A stretch of DNA of 27,961 bases, from NCBI RefSeq assembly GCF_006345805.1, contig NW_021827582.1, positions 1 through 27,961 on the forward strand. The letters run 5' to 3'. Position 1 is the stretch's first letter, and the number at the start of each line of letters is the position of its first letter. The position numbers were made by a program, and so were the translations under genes. Below are positions 1 to 26,762 of the stretch, piece by piece. The notes beneath the pieces are model-generated. The model was not told the origin of the DNA and ran no database searches. It saw only the letters and a list, made by a program, of their open reading frames with translations. Origin of the DNA: Octopus sinensis (lineage: Eukaryota).

Positions 1-350
1 AGCTGAAATATTTGATTACTGGTTTCATTGGACATTTCAAACCAAACATGAGCAGGAATGTTAGTACTGTAAGAAGCGTTCTTAAGGAGCTGCAATTTAA
101 AGTGTTCACTATCCTTTCCTTTTGCAACCCGTCCGATGTCTCTTTGAATGTATTTGATTGTATTGTATCATACAGCCTCTATGAAGTTTGAAGAAAGGGA
201 AAGAGACAACGGTTTTCTGAGCAGCAAACCAACGTCTTCCACTGGAATAAAGACAATGTTTACTGGATGCAATGATAGATTTATTATCAGTGAAAAATGA
301 CAGGGTGTTCATATTTGGAACGCATTTCATTGTAAGTCTGCCAGATTATG
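1..350 (-). mobile_element. Inverted copy of the 5' part of the HERO/R2-like LINE remnant
   Basis: Mirror of about 8880-9225. Confidence 0.55.
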
Positions 351-706
351 AGAGACATCAGCTAAAATAACAACAATAACTTGTCAGTAAACATTTAAAA
401 AATATTAAACAAACAAAACCTTTGTCATCACCTCACCTGTTAAACCACAACATATATTATTTGGCTGTTCCAAAAGAGAACCTGAAATCTATTTCGCTTC
501 TAATTTATCCATTTCACCAACCGTGCTAACCTGATTGGATACTTTATTAAATGTCAATAGTATCGATATGTTTAATATGATTAGTTTAATGCTAAAACTT
601 CCCATTGAAAGGTAAGAATGGAAGCTGCTCTTTATCATTCTGATATCAAAATAATAAGAAGATAAACCTTACAGAAATCAATCAAGTGATGTTATTTTAT
701 ACTCAC

Positions 707-757
707 CAACAGGTTCTTCCTGTGTCTGTGTTTCTTTATCTTTGAATGTTCGATTCT
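707..757 (-). pseudogene. Inverted, sequence-identical copy of exon 8473-8523 with intact splice sites
   Basis: Reverse complement of 707-757 equals 8473-8523. Minus-strand acceptor AG at 759-758 and donor GTGAGT at 706-701. Confidence 0.9.
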
Positions 758-1329
758 CTGAAATAAATATTTCCAAGTTTCAAACGTTGTAGAAAATTTT
801 ATCCATCTTTATTAATAATCTATATTTTATATCAGGGATTCCTTTCATAGATAATCAACTGTTGAAAACAATAATTTTGGTTAGAATGTTTATAGTTTGA
901 ACAGGATTACCATGTAATATTTACACTGCCTTCCAAAATTTCCTTTATCTTTTAAGACATTCGACGTCATCTAACAACTGTGTCATTATTTCATTTAATT
1001 ATCACTTGATAACACCAATCTTTTATTAGGTTTGTCTTTCCTTTCTTATATCTGCACTAAACATATGACGTGAAATTGTGCCCTCACTTCTGCCCTTCTC
1101 TAACCAACATTATTCTCAGCTTTGCTTAATTCCAATGGCAACCAGTTTGGTCATCAATGATCTAACCATTAACACATTACACACACCACTTTAAGTTGTA
1201 TAAACACTCACACCTGATCTCCTTCTTAAACATTACTGCAGGTAATCATTAGTTTTCAACTTCCTGCATCACTGTTCACCAGAATGTCAGCTGATGCATG
1301 AAATGCTTTAAAACACCTTAATAGAGCAG

Positions 1330-1700
1330 TGTTTATAAAGATGAGCGAAGATTACTTCTACACAGGTGGAACAGAAAATGATAGCAGGTGTCCTCAAAGA
1401 GGATACACTTGCACAAACTTCACTCTACTACAGGTAACTCTTCGTCCTTACATTATAGCAGTGCAAAGATCTGAAATGGTAGAATGGAAGTGATTCTGAA
1501 AACTCTAGGATATCTCTGACAACCCTCTTCTATATATCAACCAAACTTTCATCTCTCCTTTGATGTCCCCTTAATGCGGTGCCTCTGAATGGGCTGAAAA
1601 CTCAGTTCAATCAAATCTGAGGGGACGAAATGGACATCTCTGTAGAAATATTTACCTGACAGAAACCGTCTTCCTGATGTTGTAGTTAACAACATTACAA
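1330..1700 (+). mobile_element. Possible highly decayed non-LTR RT remnant (mirror at about 7525-7895, minus)
   Basis: ata gca ggt gtc ctc aaa gag gat aca ctt gca reads IAGVLKEDTLA, resembling the RT motif AGVLQGDTLAP of RTE-type LINEs. The rest is too decayed to confirm. Confidence 0.3.
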
Positions 1701-2344
1701 GGAATATGAAACCCTGCTCACACCCCATTCTACCATCACTGTTTTACCACATTTGTCACTAATGATCATTGACGTCAACTAATTGAAAATGTTTCTAAAA
1801 TGTTTTATAAAATACATCTAATTAGTGTCAAATACGTATACAGAAATGTTCCACAACATAGTGTTTCCTATGAAATGAATCGAAAACACAATACCATCAA
1901 AACATACTGAAACATAGGGACTATAATCACGGTTCGTATGGATGTGGTCTTGTAACCAAGGAAAATTGTAAAATTACAGAGAGTAATAAGGTGTAGAATG
2001 TTACTCGAAAGTGCCAAGTTCTGTTGAGGTTCTACAATTTGAGAAATGATCTACCTATGATAAGAATATTCACAATATACGATATTATGTTTAGATGCCT
2101 CTGAAACTCGTTCCGGGTGTAAAAATCGCGTTTTTGACAATTTTCAACTCGCCAGTAAACCATGTGTCGTATTCAACAATGGATCGAAACTCATTCTCCA
2201 AGATTGTATACATCTACACTTTATTCGTTCAAAATCTCAAAGTTTGCTCTTAACTTCTTCATAATTAATTTTATTTTCCAATATGTGCTTTTTAACAAAA
2301 TTGCGCAGTTCTCTGACAACTTTTATCACACAAGGTTAAAAAAA

Positions 2345-2740
2345 GTGACAGGACCAGCAAGTTCGGGGAGGGAGTACATTGATTACATCGACCCCAGTAC
2401 ACAACTGGTATTTTCCTATTGAGCCTGAAGGGGTGAAAAGGCGAAGTCAATCTCGGCAGAATTTGAAATTAGAACCTAAAGACGGACGAAATGCAGTTAA
2501 TTGCATTAACGATTCTGCCAGGGGTCACCTTATCTATTATTTAATAATATTAAAGCGGCGAACTAGCAGAATCGGTGGCGCGACGAACAAAATGCCGAGT
2601 GGCGTTTCGTCCGTCTTCTCGTTCTGAGTTTAAAATTCCACCGAGGTTGTCTTTGCCTTTCATTTTTTCAGGGTAAATAAAATAAGTACCAGTTGTGTAC
2701 TGGGGTCGATATACTCGCCTCATTTCATCCCCTGAAAATG
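2345..2740. mobile_element. Head-to-head pair of tRNA-derived SINEs (minus copy about 2345-2524, plus copy about 2555-2740)
   Basis: Both carry the family core (gttctgagtt.aaattcc.ccgagg..g.ctttgcctttcat...aagtaccag....actggggtcgat) in opposite orientations around a ~30 bp AT spacer. The same family recurs at 19320 and 22668. Confidence 0.8.
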
Positions 2741-2919
2741 ATCACAGAAGATCAATAAAAGGGCAGATATAAGCCGCCTATTTGCTAAAAATTTATATTT
2801 TAAATCATATTATTTTCATACTGAAATGCTTATGGTATTAAGGTAAAACTCCTAATTACAATTTGAGATGTTATTGATTTACAATTCATTGATTACATAT
2901 TAACAGGCAATTATCTAAA

Positions 2920-3664
2920 TAGATCATTATTATACGTTTTGTATTTTTGATTGTAAAAATAACTAGATATAAACGATGACAACCTCTTCTGGATGAGAGC
3001 AGATCCTCAGGGGCCAGCTTATAAAACCTGGCTCTCTGTCCCAGGTGCTCAAACCAATCAGATAATGTTCTGTTAGGGCACCCGACAAGCATTGCTACAG
3101 ATCGAGGAACGCCGTGGCCGAAGTCATGCGTTGATTGGTGCATGAAATTAATAAATCTTGGTTTTCATCTGAGAGTTCAATGATACAACCAATGTACCAA
3201 TCATTTTCATTCGTGTATCCAACATATTTTCAGGACCTTAACTTTGAAATATCTTGCTTAGATGCTGGCCTCTCCTCACCTAAAAGAGTGAAATTGTCAT
3301 CAGCTGATATCTTCTTCGTTAGAAGATCAGATCTTGAAGAAGGGACGAAGCGGTGATGGGATCGTGTGCCAACTGATTTCAGTGAGCTGCTGATTCGTGA
3401 AAGCAAATCGAAGCTGTTTTCACTTCGGACGACATCGGCTGCCGACATGTCAAAGAACATTATCTCTGGAATGCTTGCACATGCTCAGCCATACATCTTG
3501 CAACCTGTGAGAAAATGTCTTTCCGTGGTTACTTGTAGACTTGCTTTTTCAGCAACACATTTCTTCATCCTACTGATTCCCTCATATGTACTTTTTTCAC
3601 ATGACATGGCAAAGAAATACGACTCCGCTTCAAGTCCTTGATCATTCTGATGATGACAGAGATT
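2920..3664 (-). pseudogene. Inverted partial copy of the Sola2-like transposase remnant (C-terminal half only)
   Basis: Mirror of 5537 to about 6280. Begins abruptly at the NLCHHQND segment. Confidence 0.75.
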
Positions 3665-3837
3665 GTGGATCGCGCCTTCCTCATCCACGTGATCCCAATC
3701 GTCCTCCTGAAATCGTTACTCCACCGACATGGAGGCCTTCCGGGTGGTCGTTTCCACTCGCGCGGGTACCACTCGACAACTGCGCGTGTCCACAGATTTT
3801 CGGTGAGCTGGGCGATGTGTCCAGCCCATCTAAACAT
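3665..3837 (-). mobile_element. RTE-clade LINE ORF C-terminal fragment, cut at the inversion breakpoint
   Basis: FRWAGHIAQLTENLWTRAVVEWYPREWKRPPGRPPCRWSNDF matches the RTE C-terminal W.GH..R...RW...VLEW.PR..KR..GRP..RW.DD pattern. Confidence 0.85.
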
Positions 3838-3856
3838 ATGTATGTATGTATGTATG

Positions 3857-3901
<45 letters not shown>
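3837..3901. repeat. (TATG)n followed by (TA)n microsatellite
   Basis: Read directly from the sequence. Confidence 0.98.
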
Positions 3902-3903
<2 letters not shown>

Positions 3904-4365
3904 TGAAGTGGTGTTTCGTGTTTGGGGTTGGATATTCGATGCGCAACTTGGTTGACATTTGAATTTAGCAGAAGATGAGACGAATATTGATTAGAGATCT
4001 CTGGAGGGGAAATGACGATGTCTTGTCAAAGATCTGGAACAAACATAAGAAAACCAAAACGAAACTAAGAGAAAGTCTGTTGTTATTAGGGGATAATTAA
4101 ACGAGATAATTTCAGAATTGTTAAAATTGTTGGATGCCTTAAGAGACAGAGAAGGGTTGTTAAGTGTAGTTTATGCTGTTGTGGACCTAAATTTTGAATA
4201 ATTACATTGTAATACTGTAGAAATTATACAAATGCTCTCCAAAAGCATGATGGTCACCAGTTGACCAATGATGATAGGATTGTCTAACAATAATAAAACA
4301 TCGATTATTAATAATGATAAAGACTTTTTTCTACAGTGTTTAAAACATGAAATTGTTTATTTCAG

Positions 4366-4416
4366 AGGGTCCAAAGTCGTCAAAGCCGGAAGTCCAGATG
4401 TTAGCAGAACCACCTG
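4366..4416 (+). CDS. 51-nt symmetric (phase 1-1) linker exon
   Basis: Acceptor ttgtttatttcag|AG and donor CCTG|gtgagt. Open in frame with the downstream exons and the same length as exon 8473-8523. Confidence 0.75.
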
Positions 4417-7400
4417 GTGAGTAGAAAATAACTGTACCTAATTATGTTAGACCATATTACTCCATAAGAAGCATAGGGTTGGCTTCCCGGTTCCCCCGGC
4501 TTATTTATTCTTCCATGAAGAGGACGCTTGTCATCATCATTCATCATCATCATTATTTAGCGTCCACTTTCCCTGCTAGCATGGGTTGGACGGTGCAACT
4601 GGGGTCTGGGAAGCCAGAAGGCTGCACCAGGCCCAGTCTGATCTGGCAAAGTTTCTACGGTTGGATGCCCTTCCTAACGCCAACCACTCCGTGAGTGTAG
4701 TGGGTGCTTTTTACGTGCCACCGACACAGTTGCCAGAGGAGGCTGTCAAACGGTCACGGTCGGATGGTGCTTTTTTACGTTCCATCGGCACAGAGGTCAG
4801 ACGGGCGGCACTGGCAACGGCCACGTCTAGGTGGCTCTTTTACGTACCACCGGCATGGGGGCCAGGTGAGGCTGGCAACGGCCACGTTCGGATGGTTTTT
4901 TACGTACCACCGGCACTGGTATTACAGCTACAATTTCCATTGATGTTGATCGATTTTGATTTTGATTTAGTCCGCTGTAAAATTACATATTTTCGCCAGC
5001 TGAGTGGACTGAAGTGTTGGACATATTTAATCACGTGATTTTGACTCAGAGGATTTAGTAACGAGGATTTATGTGTACTGGGCAGCCCTGATGTGCCTAA
5101 CTTCCCCAGTGAATGATTTCCTTCAAACCGCTGAAAATGTGTTTAATACTCTGCATCAACCCCATTTCACAGCAAAGACTCAAACTAGTCTCCTTATTCA
5201 TCAGAAAGATGATCTGACATCAAATCATGCGACAGTATTGTCAGACTTGGCAGAAAATTATAGTTTTGTAGTGAAGGATTCGGAGCAAGGGTTTCATCGG
5301 AACAACTCCCAGGCCAATATATTCATCCATTCGCGATCTGTTATAAGACTGGTTCAAACCCACAATGCACTTCAATCTGTGTCATATCTGATTGTTTGAA
5401 ACATGACAATACCACAGTGCATGCTTTTATTACGAGGGTGATATCGCATATAAAGACAGAACTTCCATTCATAAACCATCTCCTGTACTTCAGTGACGGT
5501 GCAGCCGACCAATACAAGAACTAGAGACACCAAACAAATCTCTGTCATCATCAGAATGATCAAGGACTTGAAGCGGAGTCGTATTTCTTTGCCATGTCAT
5601 GTGAAAAAAGTACATATGAGGGAATCAGTAGGATGAAGAAATGTGTTGCTGAAAAAGCAAGTCTACAAGTAACCACGGAAAGACATTTTCTTACAGGTTG
5701 CAAGATGTATGGCTGAGCATGTGCAAGCATTCCAGAGATAATGTTCTTTGACATGTCGGCAGCCGATGTCGTCCGAAGTGAAAACAGCTTCGATTTGCTT
5801 TCACGAACCAGCAGCTCAGTGAAATCAGTTGGCACACGATCCCATCACCGCTTCGTCCCTTCTTCAAGATCTGATCTTCTAACGAAGAAGATATCAGCTG
5901 ATGACAATTTCACTCTTTTAGGTGAGGAGAGGCCAGCATCTAAGCAAGATATTTCAAAGTTAAGGTCCTGAAAATATGTTGGATACACGAATGAAAATGA
6001 TTGGTACATTGGTTGTATCATTGAACTCTCAGATGAAAACCAAGATTTATTAATTTCATGCACCAATCAAACGCATGACTTCGGCCACGGCGTTCCTCGA
6101 TCTGTAGCAATGCTTGTCGGGTGCCCTAACAGAACATTATCTGATTGGTTTGAGCACCTGGGACAGAGAGCCAGGTTTTATAAGCTGGCCCCTGAGGATC
6201 TGCTCTCATCCAGAAGAGGTTGTCATCGTTTATATCTAGTTATTTTTACAATCAAAAATACAAAACGTATAATAATGATCTATTTAGATAATTGCCTGTT
6301 AATATGTAATCAATGAATTGTAAATCAATAACATCTCAAATTGTAATTAGGAGTTTTACCTTAATACCATAAGCATTTCAGTATGAAAATAATATGATTT
6401 AAAATATAAATTTTTATATGTAAAATAAGATCCTTTTTAGCAAATAGGCGGCTTATATCTGCCCTTTTATTGATCTTCTGTGATCATTTTCAGGGGAGGA
6501 AATGAGGCGAGTATATCGACCCCAGTACACAACTGGTACTTATTTTATTTACCCTGAAAAAATGAAAGGCAAAGACAACCTCGGTGGAATTTTAAACTCA
6601 GAACGTGAAGACGGACGAAACGCCACTCGGCATTTTGTTCGTCGCGCCACCGATTCTGCTAGTTCGCCGCTTTAATATTATTAAATAATAGATAAGGTGA
6701 CCCCTGCCAGAATCGTTAATGCACTTAACTGCATTTCGTCCGTCTTTAGGTTCTAATTTCAAATTCTGCCGAGATTGACTTCGCCTTTTCACCCCTTCAG
6801 GCTCAATAGGAAAATACCAGTTGTGTACTGGGGTCGATGTAATCAATGTACTCCCTCCCCGAACTTGCTGGTCCTGTCACTTTTTTTAACCTTGTGTGAT
6901 AAAAGTTGTCAGAGAACTGTGCAATTTTGTTAAAAAGCACATATTGGAAAATAAAATTAATTATGAAGAAGTTAAGAGCAAACTTTGAGATTTTGAACGA
7001 ATAAAGTGTAGATGTATACAATCTTGGAGAATGAGTTTCGATCCATTGTTGAATACGACACATGGTTTACTGGCGAGTTGAAAATTGTCAAAAACGCGAT
7101 TTTTACACCCGGAACGAGTTTCAGAGGCATCTAAACATAATATCGTATATTGTGAATATTCTTATCATAGGTAGATCATTTCTCAAATTGTAGAACCTCA
7201 ACAGAACTTGGCACTTTCGAGTAACATTCTACACCTTATTACTCTCTGTAATTTTACAATTTTCCTTGGTTACAAGACCACATCCATACGAACCGTGATT
7301 ATGGTCCCTATGTTTCAGTATGTTTTGATGGTATTGTGTTTTCGATTCATTTCATAGGAAACACTATGTTGTGGAACATTTCTGTATACGTACTTGACAC

Positions 7401-10400
7401 TAATTAGATGTATTTTATAAAACATTTTAGAAACATTTTCAATTAGTTGACGTCAATGATCATTAGTGACAAATGTGGTAAAACAGTGATGGTAGAATGG
7501 GGTGTGAGCAGGGTTTCATATTCCTTGTAATGTTGTTAACTACAACATCAGGAAGACGGTTTTCTGTCAGGTGAATATTTCTACAGAGATGTCCATTTCG
7601 TCCCCTCAGATTTGATTGAACTGAGTTTTCAGCCCATTCAGAGGCACCGCATTGATTAAGGGGACATCAAAGGAGAGATGAAAGTTTGGTTGATATATAG
7701 AAGCGGGTTGTCAGAGATATCCTAGAGTTTTCAGAATCACTTCCATTCTACCATTTCAGATCTTTTCACAGCTATAATGTAAGGATGAAGAGTTACCTGT
7801 AGTAGGGTGAAGTTTGTGCAAGTGTATCCTCTTTGAGGACACCTGCTATCATTTTCTGTTCCACCTGTGTAGAAGTAATCTTCGCTCATCTTTATAAACA
7901 CTGCTCTATTAAGGTGTTTTAAAGCATTTCATGCATCAGCTGACATTCTGGTGAACAGTGATGCAGGAAGTTAAAAACTAATGATTACCTACAGTAATGT
8001 TTAAGAAGGAGATCAGGTGTAAGTGTTTATACAACTTAAAGTGGTGTGTGTAATGTGTTAATGGTTAGATCATTGATGACCAAACTGGTTGCCATTGGAA
8101 TTAAGCAAAGCTGAGAATAATGTTGGTTAGAGAAGGGCAGAAGTGAGGGCACAATTTCACGTCATATGTTTAGTGCAGATATAAGAAAGGAAAGACAAAC
8201 CTTATAAAAGATTGGTGTTATCAAGTGATAATTAAATGAAATAATGACACAGTTGTTAGATGACGTCGAATGTCTTAAAAGATAAAGGAAATTTTGGAAG
8301 GCAGTGTAAATATTACATGGTAATCCTGTTCAAACTATAAACATTCTAACCAAAATTATTGTTTTCAACAGTTGATTATCTATGAAAGGAATCCCTGATA
8401 TAAAATATAGATTATTAATAAAGATGGATAAAATTTTCTACAACGTTTGAAACTTGGAAATATTTATTTCAGAGAATCGAACATTCAAAGATAAAGAAAC
8501 ACAGACACAGGAAGAACCTGTTGGTGAGTATAAAATAACATCACTTGATTGATTTCTGTAAGGTTTATCTTCTTATTATTTTGATATCAGAATGATAAAG
8601 AGCAGCTTCCATTCTTACCTTTCAATGGGAAGTTTTAGCATTAAACTAATCATATTAAACATATCGATACTATTGACATTTAATAAAGTATCCAATCAGG
8701 TTAGCACGGTTGGTGAAATGGATAAATTAGAAGCGAAATAGATTTCAGGTTCTCTTTTGGAACAGCCAAATAATATATGTTGTGGTTTAACAGGTGAGGT
8801 AATGACAAAGGTTTTGTTTGTTTTATATTTTTTAAATGTTTACTGACAAGTTATTGTTGTTATTTTAGCTGATGTCTCTCATAATCTGGCAGACTTACAA
8901 TGAAATGCGTTCCAAATATGACCACCCTCATATTTTTCACTGATAATAAATCTATCATTGCATCCAGTAAACATTGTCTTTATTCCAGTGGAAGACGTTG
9001 GTTTGCTGCTCAGAAAACCGTTGTCTCTTTCCCTTTCTTGAAACTTCATAGAGGCTGTATGATACAATACAAATACATTCAAAGAGACATCGGACGGGTT
9101 GAAAGAAGAAGGGATAGTGAACACATTAAATTGCAGCTCCTTAAGAACCCTTCTTACAGTACTAACATTCCTGCTCATGTTTGGTTTGAAATGTCCAATG
9201 AAACCAGTAATCAAATATTTCAGCTTTGCGATTTCAGCAAGAAACAAGTATAAAGCTTAGTGAAGAAGGCAAGACCGGAGATTGCAACGGGAGATGATTG
9301 TGTACCATAGAACATGTACAAATGTTGTGCCCAGGTGTTATAAGCATTAATTACTATTTAGAGAGTTGTGGGATAAAGGTGAACTGATTAATGAATGGTG
9401 CAAGACAAAAGGATTTTATTCATCAAAGTAAGTTAATGCAAAACTAAGTGGCCAATTGAAGCCAATTTCAATCTTGAATGGCAAGATTTACAAGGCTGTA
9501 CTTGCTAAGAGATCAGCTATATATCTACAAAATAATGATTACGTAAGATGAAATATCCAGAAGGCTGGCATCTCCAGAACCCCTGTATGTAGAACATGGA
9601 TTTTCAGTTTGGGACTCGATAGAAAACACAAAGGGAAATTAAGGAATTTGAATGTGTTATGGCTTGAGCTGGTTAATGCTTTTGGCCCTCTATCAAGCAG
9701 TAAATATCTCCAATCAAGTGTTGATGGATGCAATGAACTTCTTTTATATATGAGAGAAGAGTAAGGACCTGATGAGGGGCTGCTATAACAATTTCAATAT
9801 GTGTTTCATGAGAGAAAATTTCACAAAAGACTTGCATCATTTTGAAATTGGAATTGTTGTAGTTTGCAAAATATCAGTCATTTTGTTTGTGCCTCTTATG
9901 GAGATGTTCCTTTGATCAGCAGATTGATCAAGAGAGACCGGTTCGGGTGAAATAACCTAAGAAGGATGACATCCATGGATGATATAAAAGTACCATGTAA
10001 GAGATTTGGCACAGATATAAGAAACAAAAGATAAAACTAAGGAAACAACAGTTTCTTCAATTGATAAATAAACGAGATAATTACTACGTTACTTGATAAT
10101 GAATGTAGGATGTCTTAATAGAGAGAAGTCTAGGAAGGTTAGTCTGTTTGGTTATGGACGTAAATATTGAGCTATTCCATGGGACCACGAAAGAAGTATA
10201 AAAATAATGGCCATTAATGATAAGAATGACTTACATTTATAAAATAAAGACCAATTAACAGAGACAGAGAAATTATACTATGACGTGTAAAATTTGGAAA
10301 TATTTATTTCAGAGTCTGTAAACCTGGATGAGAAACTTCTTCATAGTGTAGCAAAGAAGTTGGGGAATAAATGGCAGCAACTTGGTGAGTAAAAAAAAGC

Positions 10401-13400
10401 ACTTGATTTCTATAAATTTTGCCATTATTTGAACTTTTGTTTGTTAGAATGACTGAGAACAGGTTCCATTCCTAATTTTCTTTCGAATGGTTAGCTAAAG
10501 ATATTACTGAAATATCACCGAGTATGGTGAAATAGATAAATTAGAAGATACACAAGAGTTAATAGTGTCGTTTGGGACAGGTAACTAAATTCTATTATTG
10601 TTTACAGGTAAACAGGTGAGTTAATGTCAATGTTTCTATTTGTTTACATTGCTATTTAATATACTGGTAGGTTGTTGTTGTTGTTTAGGCAGATGTATGC
10701 CTTAATCTGGCAGACTTAAGAGGAAAAGTGTCCCAGGTGTGACGCCGTTCTTTTCTTGGCAGAACAGGACCACATTATCAAATGCAACATTCTTACAGGA
10801 GACTGTGTATCTCGTGAGACATGTTGTAGTAACTCTCCTGGTTAGCCTGTTTATTGTAGTCCTTTAGCCCCAGGACAACCTATAGTCCTCTCTCAAACCA
10901 GACAGGCCCTATTGTTAATTATTTTCCAGGGTCGCCTGGACTCAGCCCTTTAAGTTAAGGAAATACAAAATATAAAATAATCATCCTAACAGAAGTTGTA
11001 AAGACAACTTGACTTTGTTTGTCAATTGAAATCATTTCACTCTTCTTCTTTGCTTTACAAACCTCATTTGGAAAGGCATGAACATCACAATAAACCATGT
11101 CTCCTTGTCTCAAAGTTTAACAACAGAAAGTATCTTTTATACAATGCTCCTAGTATTTACAGTAATGTATTCCACCTCCCTATGGTACCTATATGCATGT
11201 AGGTAGAATGCACCATAGAGAAATGTCTTTACGTGGGACATTGAGCTTTGCTGGGGACTAGATTTGAACCTTCGTTCCCGGACACAAAAGGTCATGACAA
11301 TCACCGCAGTCATCTGATAGAAATGATTATTAAGAAAGGACATCATGTATGACGTGGCCAACTTGTTATATCTTTTGAATTCATATAAAATGTACCAGTC
11401 ATATACTGGGGTAAAATCGATTCACTAACAGCAGTCCATTATCCTCATCTTCCGTTCATTTTTCTCCCACAGTTGTGTTTCTTTGTCAGGTTTAACTTTT
11501 TTCCTTCCATTTAGATCTCCTGCCATTTCTTTACCCAAATTTTATTTTTCACACTCCCCCTCCCCATATTTCTACCATCTCCTCTCTCATGTATTAGGGT
11601 GACAACTAAGTTCCCTCTATTTTGTTTTAAAATTTAAAAGGTTTTATAAAAAACCCAGCTAATTAATGAATAATGTATTCACCCTTGTTGTTTACAACTT
11701 CTTTCCAACGTTCAACAAGATTTGTAATACCTCGTTCGTGGAAATCACCCGATTTCGACTGGAAAAATTGATCCAACCAAGCTCTCAATTCTGCATCAGT
11801 ATTGAACGAAACTCCGCGTATATCATTTGAAAGAGATCGAAAGAGGTAGAAATCCGTTGGTGCCAAATCAGGAGAGTACGGCGGGTGTGGCAGCACTTCC
11901 CAGCCATGCGTTTGAATGGCTTCCTTGGTTATATTGGCGATGTGAGGGCGGGAGTTATCGTGCAGCAGAAGAACTCCATGCTGACGATTAGGTCTTTTCT
12001 CTTGAATAGCCGTGTTGAGTCGTTCCATCTCTTGAACATAGAGTTCCGTGTTAACCGTTTGGTTCCGTTCAAGCAACTCGTCATGGATAATTCCTTCCCA
12101 GCCCCACCATACGCACAACATCGTTTAACGCGGATGAAGATCTTCTTTCACTCGCGGTGTCTCTTGTTTACCGGGGTTAAGCCATTCCTTACGCTGCTTC
12201 ATATTGATGTACAGGCACCATTTTCCGACTCTAGTAACGATTCGGCCAAGAAATCGTTGCCTGTGTCCATGAGTTGAGCGGTGACGAGCAAACAAGCCAG
12301 CAGAAATTGTGGCTCGTTGATTTCTGCTGTTGTCACTTAAAGCATGCTGAACCCATGCTCCATACTTCTGAACCCATCCCATCGAGTGAAGATGCTTCTC
12401 TATAGCAGTGTGAGAGCATTCCATTTTCTCTGACTGTTCCCCTGTCATTTGACGTGAATTTTCGTGCAAAAGTTGGTTTAATCGCTCTTCATCGAACTCA
12501 ACTGGACGGCCAGAACAAAGTGCATCTTTGAGGTCAAAATTTCCATTTGTGAACATGGCATACCAATCACAAGCGGTTCTTTCAGTTATGGCACCCTCTC
12601 CATACACTGTACAAATGTCGCGAGCAGCTTTTGCAGCCTTAGAACCTTGATTAAAAGCAAAAAAGTAGGTGTCGAAAATGCTCGTTTTTCTTAACTTGAC
12701 ATTCAGTTTTAATGATCTGAAAATAAACAAAAATTAACTAAAATTAACTACAAAGAAAACAAAATAGATTCCAAAATCATTCAAAATAGAATTCTCAAAG
12801 CAAAAATAGATTCCAAAATTTAAAAACGCCATAAATTCCAAAATTTATAAAAACCGCGGGAACTTAGTTGCCAACCCAATACTATCTCTGCTTCTTTGAA
12901 GACAAAGTTTTTCTTCCTGCTCATCTTTTGTCCAGCATCTCTACACCTGAATATTTTACTTCTAGTGAAGTATGTCCACCTCATTTCATGCCAGTTTTTA
13001 ATACATTTTCCACATTCAATGCAATATTGCACTTTACAACTACACATCACTCTGCACTTCATCTGGAAACAGAATCGCTTCAATGCAAATAGACACAACA
13101 GCTCTCTGTACAATTTTGCAGTTCAGTTACTATGCTTTCCGCATAGTCTCCTCCACTTCTAATCATACCTGTTAGGTAACAGAAACCAGCAACTACGTCT
13201 TTCAGAGTTGATATTACTTCAGATTCATTTTGTATATTTCATACTTACAAACCCCTTGCCCTCTTTCAACTTCTCTCTGATCCCACTGTACACTTTGTGT
13301 GCATTGAATACACCATATAAAAATCCTATTACCCCGACCTTTCTTTTCCTGCATATCGAATATGATAACTTCCCAGTTCAGGTAGATATTTATGGATACA

Positions 13401-14719
13401 GTAGTTCCTTCAGGATCTAACTGTTGTTGGCATGTAGATGGCGAGTCCTGCCTTCGTTTTTGCTAAAACACTTCTCATTGTAAGGGTTACCTTGAAACCT
13501 CTCCATTATAAGAATTTCTCTAAAGAGTGGAAGAAATCATTATTATGAGTCATGAATACAGAAAGACTAAGCTGTTGCCTTTTATAATATGTGATGTGTA
13601 GCAATCACTATGAAATTGTTTGTGTGGTTGACATCATTCTACCATGCCTTGTATGTATTTCTATTTTAATTGGTCCAGGTGTACCAAATATTATTGTTAT
13701 TATTTGACATTTCAATCTCAGCTTTCTAGATATTTGTAAATATGACAATTTGAGGCATTGACCATGGAATGTTATCAAACGTCGGAAATAGACTCCTTTT
13801 GAGGGGTCTCTGGAGTAACGTTACTCGACAGGGTGTGTAGGCTGGAGAATTGGGTGTCTCTCCAGGTCAAACGGCTGCTTCTCTGCATTGAGAAGTCAGA
13901 ACTCCAGTAATAGAGAAACGTGATTAGAATGTCACAAAAATGAATCGCAAAACGGGTTCTTGAAGCTGAGCCAACTGACAGGAGACCCCTAGGGGTAGAT
14001 CGAGACTAGATTGTTGGATAAAATCCATAGTTTCAATTGGTCATCTTTGAGAATGGATTCAGAAAATCTTCTGATAGGACCCGACGAAGGAGATTCCTAA
14101 AGACTCTACCCCAGCAACCCTTCTATGAATAAAGGACAGAGAAAATGGATGGATGGATCAAATCGTGTAACTGTTGGTCTCTATTGATTCTTTAGGCTCT
14201 CATACACTCTTACCCACAGAAAAACACTTCTCCTTCCTGCTCTTTACCAAACATTTTCTCGTGTAACTTTCAGTTAATTCTTTTTCAAAATGTTTTCTCC
14301 ATTTCCAGCCTTTATTTCAAAATGTTTGTTATTTTTGTCAACATCTTTAGAAACAGAGACCAATGTCTTCTATTTTCCCTGTTTCTTAAGTATTTCTCAT
14401 TCCTCTAATCACATGATTTCTTTGCTATATTTATAACAACCCACCACACACGTGTGTTATATTATCGGTAATGTTGTTTTAATTATATTTTTGTATTGTT
14501 GTATCTTTTGCAGGGAGAGAATTAGGAATTAAACAAGTTGACCTGAACATTATCAAGAGTGACTTCCCTAATGATACAGCAGAACAAAGTTTCCAGATGC
14601 TCTATAAATGGTTCCAGTGTTGTGATCCAGCGAATCGTACACTTAAAACATTAACGGAAGCTCTGACGGAAATCGAGTGTTTCGACGCTCTTGAACGTCT
14701 ATCATTAGACACAAATTGA
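4366..14719 (+). CDS. 3' part of a spliced gene encoding a C-terminal death-domain protein (exons 4366-4416, 8473-8523, 10313-10384, 14514-14719; 5' exons not in window)
   Basis: The four GT-AG exons join in one open frame through phase-1 introns: (E)GPKSSKPEVQMLAEPP|ENRTFKDKETQTQEEPV|ESVNLDEKLLHSVAKKLGNKWQQL|GRELGIKQVDLNIIKSDFPNDTAEQSFQMLYKWFQCCDPANRTLKTLTEALTEIECFDALERLSL DTN*. The pattern L..VA..LG..W..LGR.LG......I......EQ...ML..W......T...L..AL matches the death-domain fold consensus. No orthologue can be assigned. Confidence 0.88.
4531..4965 (-). mobile_element. 3' end of an RTE-type LINE (or derived SINE) with (ATG)n tail and internal ~63-bp tandem repeat
   Basis: (CAT)n at 4531-4553, then ggatgcccttcctaacgccaacc, a 3'UTR motif I recall from RTE-type elements. 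Four copies of ttttacgt.cca.cggca follow. Confidence 0.7.
4975..6280 (+). pseudogene. Decayed DDE DNA-transposase, Sola2-like (family assignment inferred from motifs)
   Basis: Frameshifted translation shows DLAENYSFVV.D..QGFH, ISDCLKHD...VHAFI, YFSDGAADQYKN, FFAMSC.KS.YEGI (degenerate HGK...DG.G), GTRSHH.FVP and a C-terminal DWYIG.I.E.SDE segment. Contains stops and frameshifts. Confidence 0.75.
6485..6880. mobile_element. Head-to-head SINE pair in the right arm (mirror of 2345-2740)
   Basis: Reverse complement of the left-arm pair. Confidence 0.8.
8473..8523 (+). CDS. 51-nt symmetric (phase 1-1) linker exon encoding ENRTFKDKETQTQEEPV
   Basis: Acceptor tatttatttcag|AG and donor GTTG|gtgagt. 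In frame with the death-domain exons. Confidence 0.78.
8880..10150 (+). mobile_element. Decayed RLE-type (HERO/R2-like) non-LTR retrotransposon RT region
   Basis: With stops: FSKKQV*SLVKKARP..A.G.D.VP..MYK, ELWDKGEL..EWCK, QLKPISILN.KIY, IQKAGI, NLNVLWLELVNAFGP, GI..VCKISVILF, SMDDI and later CRM...KSR. These match HERO-type RT motifs such as WLDLANAYGS, GCTISVILF and FMDD. Confidence 0.75.
10313..10384 (+). CDS. Death-domain exon 1 (72 nt, N-terminal helices)
   Basis: tatttatttcag|AG...CTTG|gtgagt. Encodes ESVNLDEKLLHSVAKKLGNKWQQL. Confidence 0.88.
11594..12879 (-). mobile_element. Full-length (1286 bp) mariner transposon with TA target duplication
   Basis: TIRs ttagggtgacaactaagttccc (from 11594) and gggaacttagttgccaacccaa (to 12879), flanked by TA at 11592-93 and 12880-81. 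Internal transposase remnant. Confidence 0.93.
11663..12730 (-). pseudogene. Mariner transposase, frameshifted
   Basis: Two ORFs (12125-12730 and 11663-12121) carry WVQHAL (WVPHEL-like), HDNSRPH and YSPDLAPTD. The first catalytic motif GDEKW reads RVGKW and the frame breaks near 12123. Confidence 0.92.
13780..14158 (+). mobile_element. RTE-clade (Rex3/Expander-like) LINE 3' end
   Basis: GVTLLDRV...LQV.RLLLCIEKS.L...VIRM....AKRVLEA.PT.RRP.G, ending in the gaaaatggatggatgg tail. Confidence 0.75.
14514..14719 (+). CDS. Terminal death-domain exon with stop codon
   Basis: Acceptor gtatcttttgcag|GG. 2 nt plus 68 codons ending in TGA at 14717-14719. Completes the death-domain consensus. Confidence 0.9.
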
Positions 14720-17672: not shown

Positions 17673-18736
17673 GATGTACAAGGCGCAGTGTAGTGACCAT
17701 CTTTTTATCCGGCAACCCGGATGCTCTTTCTACTGTCCTCGAATGGCTTCAAAGTTGACAGCACCCATTAGATGATGCTCAGTCAAGCTGCTTTCCATCC
17801 AGATGTCCTCACATCTCAATCTGTCATCTTTAGCCGAACAAAGACTTAGTCCAGTGGCGTGAGATGGAGAGCGGAGACGAATGTTTGGGGATATCTATGA
17901 AATGCAGGTGGACAGAGAGACATCCGATGGGCACAGTCGTCTTTTGTGATCAATTATCGAATATGTAGGGTTTGCATCGCCAAATAACGTCCCCTCGTGT
18001 GGTCGAAGCCCTGGCTAGCAAAATATATTTAGAGAATGAATTGCTGATGAATAAGACTATGAAGGTTATACTGCGTCACACCATACTGCACAGAACTACA
18101 CCGAGTCACATCGCGGCACACCGCGTCTGCAAATGATGGATAATGCTGGGAAGATATGACAAAATAAACAGCAGTGTATTACACAATCCCCGCTGTATTA
18201 AAGTATCCGTGTTTGTGACTCTCTCTCTCAGATGTCCGGGGGGACACCTTCCATGTGTGTGTGTGTGTGTCCGTCACCTATTCACCGTCTAACTCTATTC
18301 TATTTGTGGGACACAGCTGCTGAGTCATCTTTGGATTTTGTCTAAATAAAGGATCAGCCAAGAACTCGAAATTAAAATTCAATCGATAAGAAAACAAGTT
18401 GAGGTGATGGAACTGATTTAGCATTTATCATATATTTGGAGAGATTTGGCTGACCAGTAAAGTTATGTGGCTATTGTAGGTAAGCATAAAACGAAAGAAC
18501 AATAAGAAGCGTAAGTTTGAAACACAGCACAATTATCTGATGTAAAATTGAAGTAAATCAATTGAGGTTTGAAAATACACAAGCTCCGACTGTCAATGTT
18601 AGATATCTATCTAAAACTTGTAGACATTTTGTCGTATCATTTATCATTTTGTTGTATCACTGTGCTCCGCTCCGAATTTGTTTTCTTATAACGTTCAGAA
18701 AATTGGAGATATTTTAAAGGAAATTTCCAGCTCATA

Positions 18737-19137
18737 GGCGCAGGAGTGGCTGTGTGGTAAGTAGCTTGCTAACCAACCACATGGTTCCGGGTTCAGTCCC
18801 ACTGCGTGGCATCTTGGGCAAGTGTCTTCTGCTATCGCCCCGGGCCGACCAATGCCTTGTGAGTGGATTTGGTAGACGGAAACTGAAAGAAGCCTGTCGT
18901 ATATATGTATATATATGTGTGTGTGTTTGTGTGTCTGTGTTTGTCCCCCTAGCATTGCTTGACAACCGATGCTGGTGTGTTTATGTCCCCGTTACTTAGC
19001 GGTTCGGCAAAAGAGACTGATAGAATGAGTACTGGGCTTACAAAAGAATAAGTCCCGGGGTCGAGTTGCTCGATTAAAGGCGGTGCTCCAGCATGGCCGC
19101 AGTCAAATGACTGAAACAAGTAAAAGAGTAAAGAGTA
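18737..19137 (+). mobile_element. Full-length tRNA-derived SINE (third family) with internal (TA/TG) tract
   Basis: Head ggcgcaggagtggctgtgtggtaag...ggttcagtccc and tail gactgaaacaagtaaaagagta. A near-identical copy lies at 26385. Confidence 0.9.
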
Positions 19138-19319: not shown

Positions 19320-19478
19320 AGGGGACTAGTCGATTACATCGACCCAGTACTCAGCTGGTACTTAATTTATCAACCCCGAAAGGATGAAAGGCAAAGTCGA
19401 CCTCGGCGGAATTTGAACTCAGAACGTATTGACGGGCGAAATACCTCAAAGCATTTCGTCTAGCTTGCTGCCTTCCAT
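19320..19478 (-). mobile_element. SINE, same family as 2345-2740
   Basis: gtcgattacatcgacccagt...gatgaaaggcaaagtcgacctcggcggaatttgaactcagaacgt. Confidence 0.85.
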
Positions 19479-22667: not shown

Positions 22668-22904
22668 GAGGGGCATAATCGATTATATCGACACTGGAAT
22701 GCGACCGAGGCGTTATTTTATGATCTGCAGATGGATGAAAGATGAAACAAACTTGAGCAGGTTTAAATTTAAAATATTATGTCAACACCGAAAAGATGAA
22801 AGCTGGAGATGACCTCGGCAGAATTTGAACTCAGAAAGTACAGACGGATTAAATGCTGTTCAGCATTTTGTCCGGCGTGTTAACGACTCTGCCAGTTCAC
22901 CGCC
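22668..22904 (-). mobile_element. Diverged SINE, same family as 2345-2740
   Basis: atcgattatatcgac...gacctcggcagaatttgaactcagaa...gactctgccagttcaccgcc. Confidence 0.75.
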
Positions 22905-26200: not shown

Positions 26201-26384
26201 AGGGTAGTAACTCTTCTTGCATCCCTTTTTGCTTTCAACTGTATTACTTTCCGTTGTGTTAAATAAAATCTGTTTTACTGCGCAGACTCTGAAGATATCC
26301 AATTAGAATTCAATGTAAATAAGAGATCGAACTATTTAGAAAACATTATCAATAAATATCGAACACTTCTACACATAACATATA

Positions 26385-26762
26385 GGCGCAGGAGTGGCTG
26401 TGTGGTAAGTAGCTTGCTAACCAACCACACGGTTGCGGGTTCAGTCCCACTGCGTGGCATCTTGGGCAAGTGTCTTCTGCTATAGCCCCGGGCCGACCAA
26501 AGCCTTGTGAGTGGATTTGGTAGACGGAAACTGAAAGAAGCCTGTCGTATATATGTATATATGTTATATGTGTGTGTGTTTGTGTGTCTGTGTTTGTCCC
26601 CCTAGCATTGCTTGACAACCGATGCTGGTGTATTTAGGTCCCCGTCACTTAGCGGTTCGGCAAAAAGAGACCGATAGAATAAGTACTAAAAGGTGGTGCT
26701 CCAGCATGGCCGCAGTCAAATGACTGAAACAAGTAAAAGAGTAAAAGAGAGAGTAAAGAGTA
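26385..26762 (+). mobile_element. SINE, same family as 18737-19137, with internal deletion
   Basis: Near-identical to 18737-19137 but lacks about 42 bp (gggcttacaaaagaataagtcccggggtcgagttgctcgatt). Confidence 0.9.

Follow-up and report, generated by a model that had tools for sequence, protein, structure and literature searches.

A 51-nucleotide (nt) exon of the octopus Octopus sinensis, at positions 8473-8523 of an unplaced contig, encodes a T-Q-T anchor of the kind bound by the dynein light chain LC8, shortly upstream of a death domain. We lean towards reading it as an LC8-type module in an octopus-specific family of ankyrin, RING and death-domain proteins, derived from a tandemly duplicated unit of the first death-domain exon, with its docking and role proposed from in silico work. 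The exon itself is a genuine linker micro-exon in a 3′ fragment of one member of this gene family. The window referred to throughout is the entire contig (C4053; 27,961 bp), taken from an assembly of 2.72 Gb in 13,516 contigs.

A linker micro-exon in an octopus gene family

The exon is preceded by a polypyrimidine tract and an AG (acceptor ...tatttatttcag) and followed by the donor GTGAGT. It lies in a frame that runs on into the death domain as (E)NRTFKDKETQTQEEPV, with the anchor codons ACA CAG ACA at 8499-8507. An exhaustive protein search returned a public model of 132 residues, XP_029654209.1 (P0001 below), which joins exactly 4366-4416, 8473-8523, 10313-10384 and 14514-14719, and this public protein was used for all analyses of the spliced product. 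Pfam places a Death domain (PF00531) at its residues 49-127 with an E-value of 1.1e-13, and the T-Q-T occupies residues 33-35, 14 residues upstream of that domain. The claim of the initial annotation that an LC8-type T-Q-T motif is encoded by a micro-exon upstream of the death domain is thus upheld by the 51-nt exon, by its frame and by the public protein. The same annotation had described the segment 4366-4416, here called exon A, as a paralogous exon with a degenerate anchor, and the two exons do align without gaps, the glutamine being kept (EVQM versus ETQT). The first seven residues of P0001, MKLFISE, are a translation of the intron preceding exon A, so the public model is truncated.

Contigs from four sequencing runs, whose RNA or DNA nature was assigned by guess, were compared with positions 3000-8999 of the window (6,000 letters). 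One contig of run X10, taken to be RNA, covers exactly 4366-4416, which indicates that exons of this class are spliced at the predicted boundaries. It carries a RING-tail exon upstream and a unit exon of the paralogue type downstream, and so it comes from a paralogue and not from the window gene. A pseudo-exon inside a satellite-like repeat was considered as an explanation of the exon and rejected, since the public models and this RNA-like contig splice the exon class at exactly these boundaries.

The relatives that we found were Octopus proteins, from O. sinensis, O. vulgaris and O. bimaculoides. The family architecture consists of ankyrin repeats, one zf-C3HC4_3 RING (PF13920), a linker of 17-residue repeats and a C-terminal Death domain (PF00531), the ankyrin, RING and Death domains having been located by Pfam in P0005, P0009, P0027 and P0006. 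The window protein has the C-terminal Death domain and the 17-residue linker modules in common with P0006 and P0046. A six-frame search of the O. sinensis genome with one family member gave more than 150 exon matches, and the family is therefore very large. The O. vulgaris model P0002, on a 12-Mb scaffold, combines ankyrin and RING exons with a death-domain exon 2 identical to that of the window, which makes the existence of an intact orthologue probable. The simple “death-domain adaptor” first proposed for the window has accordingly to be given up, the protein being the C-terminal fragment of an ankyrin-RING-death-domain family member. Our literature search found no paper describing such a family in octopus.

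Most family members are named “MIB1/MIB2-like” by NCBI. Like the MIB1/MIB2 E3 ubiquitin ligases, the octopus proteins have ankyrin repeats followed by a zf-C3HC4_3 RING; unlike them, they have a death domain at the C-terminus, and the octopus models scanned showed no MIB/HERC2 or ZZ domain at the N-terminus. The window contig differs further in holding no ankyrin or RING part. P0001 itself bears the name RIPK1, with which it shares a C-terminal death domain (PF00531), but it has no kinase domain. The name rests solely on the death-domain similarity of a truncated 132-residue model, and it is misleading whether or not LC8 binds.

A different type of unit is found in the subfamilies of P0027, P0018 and P0009, where the 17-residue units read C-P-x-C-K-E-K-A-V-K-T-V-V-E-S-F. 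Their CxxC pairs, one every 17 residues, look like strings of zinc knuckles and resemble the last CPxC of the RING. The Q-T is carried by the units free of cysteine.

Fit to the LC8 motif and predicted docking

The dynein intermediate chain (K-E-T-Q-T), Bim (D-K-S-T-Q-T) and Bmf (D-K-A-T-Q-T) carry canonical single LC8/DYNLL motifs. The window exon resembles these in its T-Q-T anchor, in the K at -3 and D at -4, and in lying within a disordered segment. It differs in having Q at +2, in being a young duplicated micro-exon rather than a conserved site, and in that its binding is predicted only. The published rules describe LC8 binders as peptides with a T-Q-T anchor that have a hydrogen-bonding side chain, commonly Asp, at -4 and a large, positively charged one at -3; proline is avoided ahead of the anchor and a bulky hydrophobic side chain at -2, and a strand breaker (P, D or E) is preferred at +2 (PMC6607443). 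With the glutamine of the anchor at position 0, the window motif fits in its D at -4 and K at -3, in its E at -2 and in its lack of a proline; its +2 residue is Q and not one of the preferred three, and the segment is rather highly charged. Given the anchor and the residues at -4 and -3, the original description of D-K-x-T-Q-T as a canonical LC8 motif agrees with these rules.

A canonical LC8 of 89 residues stands in a single open frame at L046:1489-1755 of the O. sinensis genome. We predicted the structure of a complex of two LC8 chains with two copies of P0001 residues 8-47. The complex scored 0.84 compared to 0.01 for the best control, a mark reached by 51 of 78 solved complexes and by 2 of 108 mismatched pairs; the predicted local distance difference test (pLDDT) value of the partner did not fall below 54, and 94% or more of the contacts were common to the runs. 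In the predicted interface, P0001 residues 26-35 (RTFKDKETQT) lie against LC8 residues 59-70 and against residues 34-36 of the other protomer, so that the window peptide would use the LC8 beta-strand 59-70 in the manner of the canonical single motifs. Going by these models, the D-K-E-T-Q-T module can probably dock into an octopus LC8 dimer. AlphaFold2, run with a 26-sequence alignment, gave linker residues 1-41 pLDDT values of 44-49 and no secondary structure, compared to 87-97 for the death domain, and the linker between RING and death domain is predicted to be unstructured, as an LC8 client needs.

LC8-like genes are multiplied in this assembly: at least nine full-length, intron-free Dynein_light (PF01221) frames occur among 22 matches, including those at C25:12066054, C8597:280489, and C8459:191318 and 193825.

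Some LC8 clients are multivalent, for instance ASCIZ with seven sites and Nup159 with five (PMC10046861). A similar picture is offered by the octopus paralogues P0006, P0046, P0036/P0063 and P0015, in whose disordered linkers 2-4 motif-like units recur every 17 residues. They differ from ASCIZ and Nup159 in that exon duplication and cassette splicing determine how many sites there are, and in that LC8 assembly on their linkers is hypothetical. KETQT units number two in P0006 and three in P0046, and VQT units three to four in P0036/P0063 (O. bimaculoides) and four in P0015; the window's own gene has one canonical and one degenerate site. NCBI isoform models of paralogues vary in the same element, by exactly one 17-residue unit: in one O. 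sinensis gene P0068 (312 residues) has two units and P0026 and P0069 (295 residues) have one of them each, and P0037 and P0065 differ by 17 residues (424 versus 407). Since every module is of phase 1/1, splicing can take in or leave out each one with the frame kept. The term “cassette”, as applied at first to 8473-8523, is therefore apt as far as the splice sites, the symmetric phase and the isoform models of paralogues go, though not for the behaviour of this exon itself. In the same way, the modular array of LC8 sites proposed for the window has a counterpart in paralogues, which hold arrays of such motif-like units spliced as cassettes, but it does not extend to exon A. That exon was tried as a second LC8 site and rejected, having a proline before the anchor and M at +1, and not being placed in the LC8 groove. 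No paper linking LC8 T-Q-T motifs to death-domain proteins was found in our search of the literature.

Duplicated units, selection and alternative explanations

Exon A, the T-Q-T exon and death-domain exon 1 share some 85 nt of the intron before them and the opening tens of bases of the intron after them, as traced through repeat families D11, D13 and D14 and alignment A1. These shared flanks show the micro-exons to be tandem copies of the ~2-kb unit in which death-domain exon 1 lies, shortened to 51 nt. The T-Q-T type of unit is present in exactly 20 copies in the assembly, including the two mirror copies of the window, and these often stand in tandem with a period of ~2 kb; numerous other unit types are more distant, with an identity of about 70%. 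Copies on C27 and C8427 encode a peptide identical to that of the window exon. The three nucleotide differences between the window exon and the C27 copy are all synonymous, which is the only positive hint of selection.

The unit at 8250-8750 is a mosaic, a sign of gene conversion among paralogues: 8250-8449 most resembles a copy on C8471, and from 8450 on the sequence most resembles those on C27 and C8427.

In the account that we favour, tandem duplication of a ~2-kb unit holding the first death-domain exon gave rise to 17-residue modules of phase 1/1. These modules, variable in number, encode a spacer predicted to be unstructured, which separates the RING from the death domain. The subfamily that is youngest (20 units, including the window exon and its mirror copy) has K-E-T-Q-T in its modules, here with a D before it. 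If the motif is used, LC8 would pair two chains and so bring together two RINGs and two death domains, and the number of sites would be set by gene copy and by splicing.

Much of what weighs against this account favours another one, which we regard as a real possibility short of a probable one: that the module is genuine and functionally indifferent, serving as a spacer only. Under that explanation K-x-[TV]-Q-T would be a leftover of death-domain helix 1 (E-E-K-x-L-L-x-V-A) altered by drift, and LC8 would not be recruited in the cell. The units were copied from the death-domain exon 1 unit, and death-domain exon 1 of family members also has K at -3, a hydrophobic residue at -1 and V at +2. Nucleotide diversity among 19 aligned copies is 0.094 in the exon, 0.097-0.12 in the upstream intron and 0.03-0.05 in the downstream intron, the exon thus being as diverse as the upstream intron and more so than the downstream one. 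Of the 18 other copies, 3 or 4 have an altered anchor (MKT, THT and IQK, plus MQT); N-R-T-F and E-P-V are invariant among the aligned copies. The anchor codons are not spared within the 20-copy subfamily, non-synonymous changes being as frequent in them as in other codons, and selection specific to the anchor was looked for in the duplicated copies and not seen. Conservation of the T-Q-T, which the initial annotation had named as a check on its proposal, does not therefore exceed neutral expectation among the paralogous copies. Parsimony on the flank tree gave 18 synonymous and 25 non-synonymous changes, a ratio of non-synonymous to synonymous rates (dN/dS) of roughly 0.4 that is blurred by gene conversion; the window unit is recombinant, and for that reason we rejected the 18/25 count as a clean test of selection.

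The sister subfamilies point the same way, since they have VKT (with CPxC) or VQA at the anchor place, both of which are poor LC8 anchors by published rules (PMC6607443). Because of these subfamilies, and because the pattern is partly inherited from death-domain helix 1, selection for LC8 binding is not supported. Many T-Q-T peptides fail to bind LC8, and a highly charged segment is unfavourable (PMC6607443). As to the docking, two-client structure predictions score a sizeable share of non-binders as confident (PMC12057147), and the pass obtained here may stem from the model's memory of solved LC8 complexes.

Against a mere spacer stands the recurrence of [TVI]-Q-T with K or R at -3 in distant, otherwise dissimilar units of three Octopus species, which is suggestive but confounded by common descent. 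The D-K-E-T-Q-T of the window is moreover as canonical as the motifs of known binders, its predicted docking is strong and specific to the motif, and its differences from the C27 copy are synonymous only.

A second alternative, unlikely in our estimation, is that the exon belongs to a dead copy or an assembly fragment, that is, to a truncated gene or a mis-joined haplotype contig that makes no protein, in which case only the paralogues matter. The 28-kb contig is unplaced and holds the 3′ end of the gene only (linker and death domain), with no ankyrin or RING exon on it; the 19 exact copies of the end of the RING-tail exon all lie outside the window, at other places in the genome. It is thus possible that this copy is a truncated gene or a fragment of the assembly. 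The public model P0001 begins within an intron, and on the upstream side of exon A one finds a truncated high-copy repeat and then a mirrored copy of the downstream intron. Among the rows shown, no RNA piece lies on 8473-8523 and no loose end falls at 8473 or 8523, the depth of run X10 being 0.6 in the bin 8400-8599. Contigs cannot show absence, however, and neither the frame nor any splice site of the four exons is disrupted; the O. vulgaris model P0002 probably represents an intact orthologue.

The inverted repeat, other elements and wider meaning

In the assembly the T-Q-T exon lies within a 3.66-kb inverted repeat (Table 1). Its arms are 99% complementary, and of the 38 differences between them (32 substitutions, 6 indels) 14 fall within the first 430 nt. 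Exon A lies in the 1.87-kb spacer between the arms, and the left arm passes into this spacer at a truncated high-copy repeat, covered to a depth of more than 100,000. Since the junction abuts this repeat, short-read contigs break there, and the loose ends found at 3666 in all four runs derive from other copies of the repeat. The right junction is ancestral, as judged from the C27 paralogue, which is collinear across it; no inverted arm is found at that paralogue. Both arm variants are present in DNA contigs, which fits either two copies or two haplotypes. We give slightly better than an even chance to the inverted repeat being an assembly join, in which two haplotypes were stitched together, rather than a fold-back duplication.

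Table 1. Coordinates of the exons, motif, flanks and repeat arms in the window
Feature	Position	Strand	Details
Linker micro-exon with KETQT	8473..8523	+	51 nt, AG/GT-bounded, phase 1/phase 1; reads ENRTFKDKETQTQEEPV
LC8-type motif K-D-K-E-T-Q-T-Q, eight residues (positions -5 to +2)	8487..8510	+	Sequence reading
Exon A, paralogous micro-exon	4366..4416	+	51 nt, phase 1/1; reads GPKSSKPEVQMLAEPP; degenerate V-Q-M at anchor place
Death-domain exon 1	10313..10384	+	Intron flanks homologous to those of both micro-exons; repeat families D11, D14
Death-domain exon 2	14514..14719	+	Stop codon 14717-14719; Pfam Death E-value 1.9e-08 on exon 2 alone
Upstream intron flank common to three exon units	8387..8472, 4280-4365, 10227-10312	+	Alignment; families D11, D13
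Inverted repeat, left arm	1..3664	-	Reaches the first base of the contig; mirror copy of the T-Q-T exon at 707-757, minus strand
Inverted repeat, right arm	5537..9225	+	Holds the T-Q-T exon; collinear with the paralogue on C27

The T-Q-T exon had been described as buried in a double-stranded RNA stem, with adenosine-to-inosine editing of its anchor codons as a possible link to death-domain assembly. An inverted repeat containing the exon is indeed present in the assembly; its existence in the animal, or in one transcript, does not follow from this. Across positions 3000-8999 there was no excess of A>G, the RNA-like runs giving 13 and 1 and the DNA runs 10 and 12, in contigs that drop rare variants, and no difference was listed inside 8473-8523 among the rows shown. 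Coleoid cephalopods recode extensively by RNA editing, and this, with the inverted repeat seen in the assembly around the T-Q-T exon, counts for a switch in which the repeat forms double-stranded RNA in the pre-mRNA and ADAR edits ACA CAG ACA, destroying the LC8 motif. Such a switch is nonetheless highly improbable: the left arm extends as far as the first base of an unplaced contig, with its junction at a truncated high-copy repeat, the C27 paralogue has no inverted arm, the ~1% divergence of the arms fits two haplotypes, and A>G differences in RNA-like runs do not rise above those in DNA runs. The proposed editing link thus found no backing, and the mirror duplication is to be treated cautiously before hypotheses of RNA structure or editing are built on it.

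DNA contigs also join 5999 to 8044, and the C27 paralogue (L033, C27:18134614) is without window positions 6003-7995; a 2-kb insertion is therefore present in each arm of the palindrome and lacking in related copies. Extremely high-copy repeats occupy 4400-5000 and 6400-6600, where the summed contig depth of the DNA runs reaches 6 million and many internal deletion joints are seen. Sequences resembling short interspersed nuclear elements lie at 2393-2517, 6521-6638, 19343-19467 and 22775-22879. The intron between the two death-domain exons holds a Mos1/mariner transposase remnant on the minus strand (11663-12730), split into two open reading frames (HTH_48, E-value 1.4e-13; Transposase_1, E-value 4.2e-14). 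Two direct copies of a ~400-nt element, 97-98% identical and 7.6 kb apart, are found at 18734-19132 and 26382-26745, with further copies on C27. From ~22900 to ~25900 runs a ~3-kb purine-rich simple repeat of the (GAAA/GGAA)n-like kind, with a GC skew of ~0.8 and an AT skew of up to 0.96, which yields long spurious open reading frames on both strands.

To return to the LC8-type module, a bolder extension of it, which we consider decidedly doubtful, is that in alternatively spliced TQT/VQT arrays the number of units retained sets how many LC8 dimers join two chains, and hence both RING dimerisation (E3 activity) and death-domain nucleation. The family would then be a lineage-specific system of immune or cell-death signalling, with exon duplication and splicing adjusting the threshold at which it assembles. 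Should LC8 fail to bind, the exon is an ordinary, fast-evolving linker cassette. If LC8 does bind, the docking site of a hub protein would have been multiplied by exon duplication within a hugely expanded cephalopod family of E3-ligase/death-domain proteins, and splicing could tune the strength of pairing, a simple way to adjust death-domain signalling. The module would then also be a short linear motif born from a duplicated piece of a folded domain.

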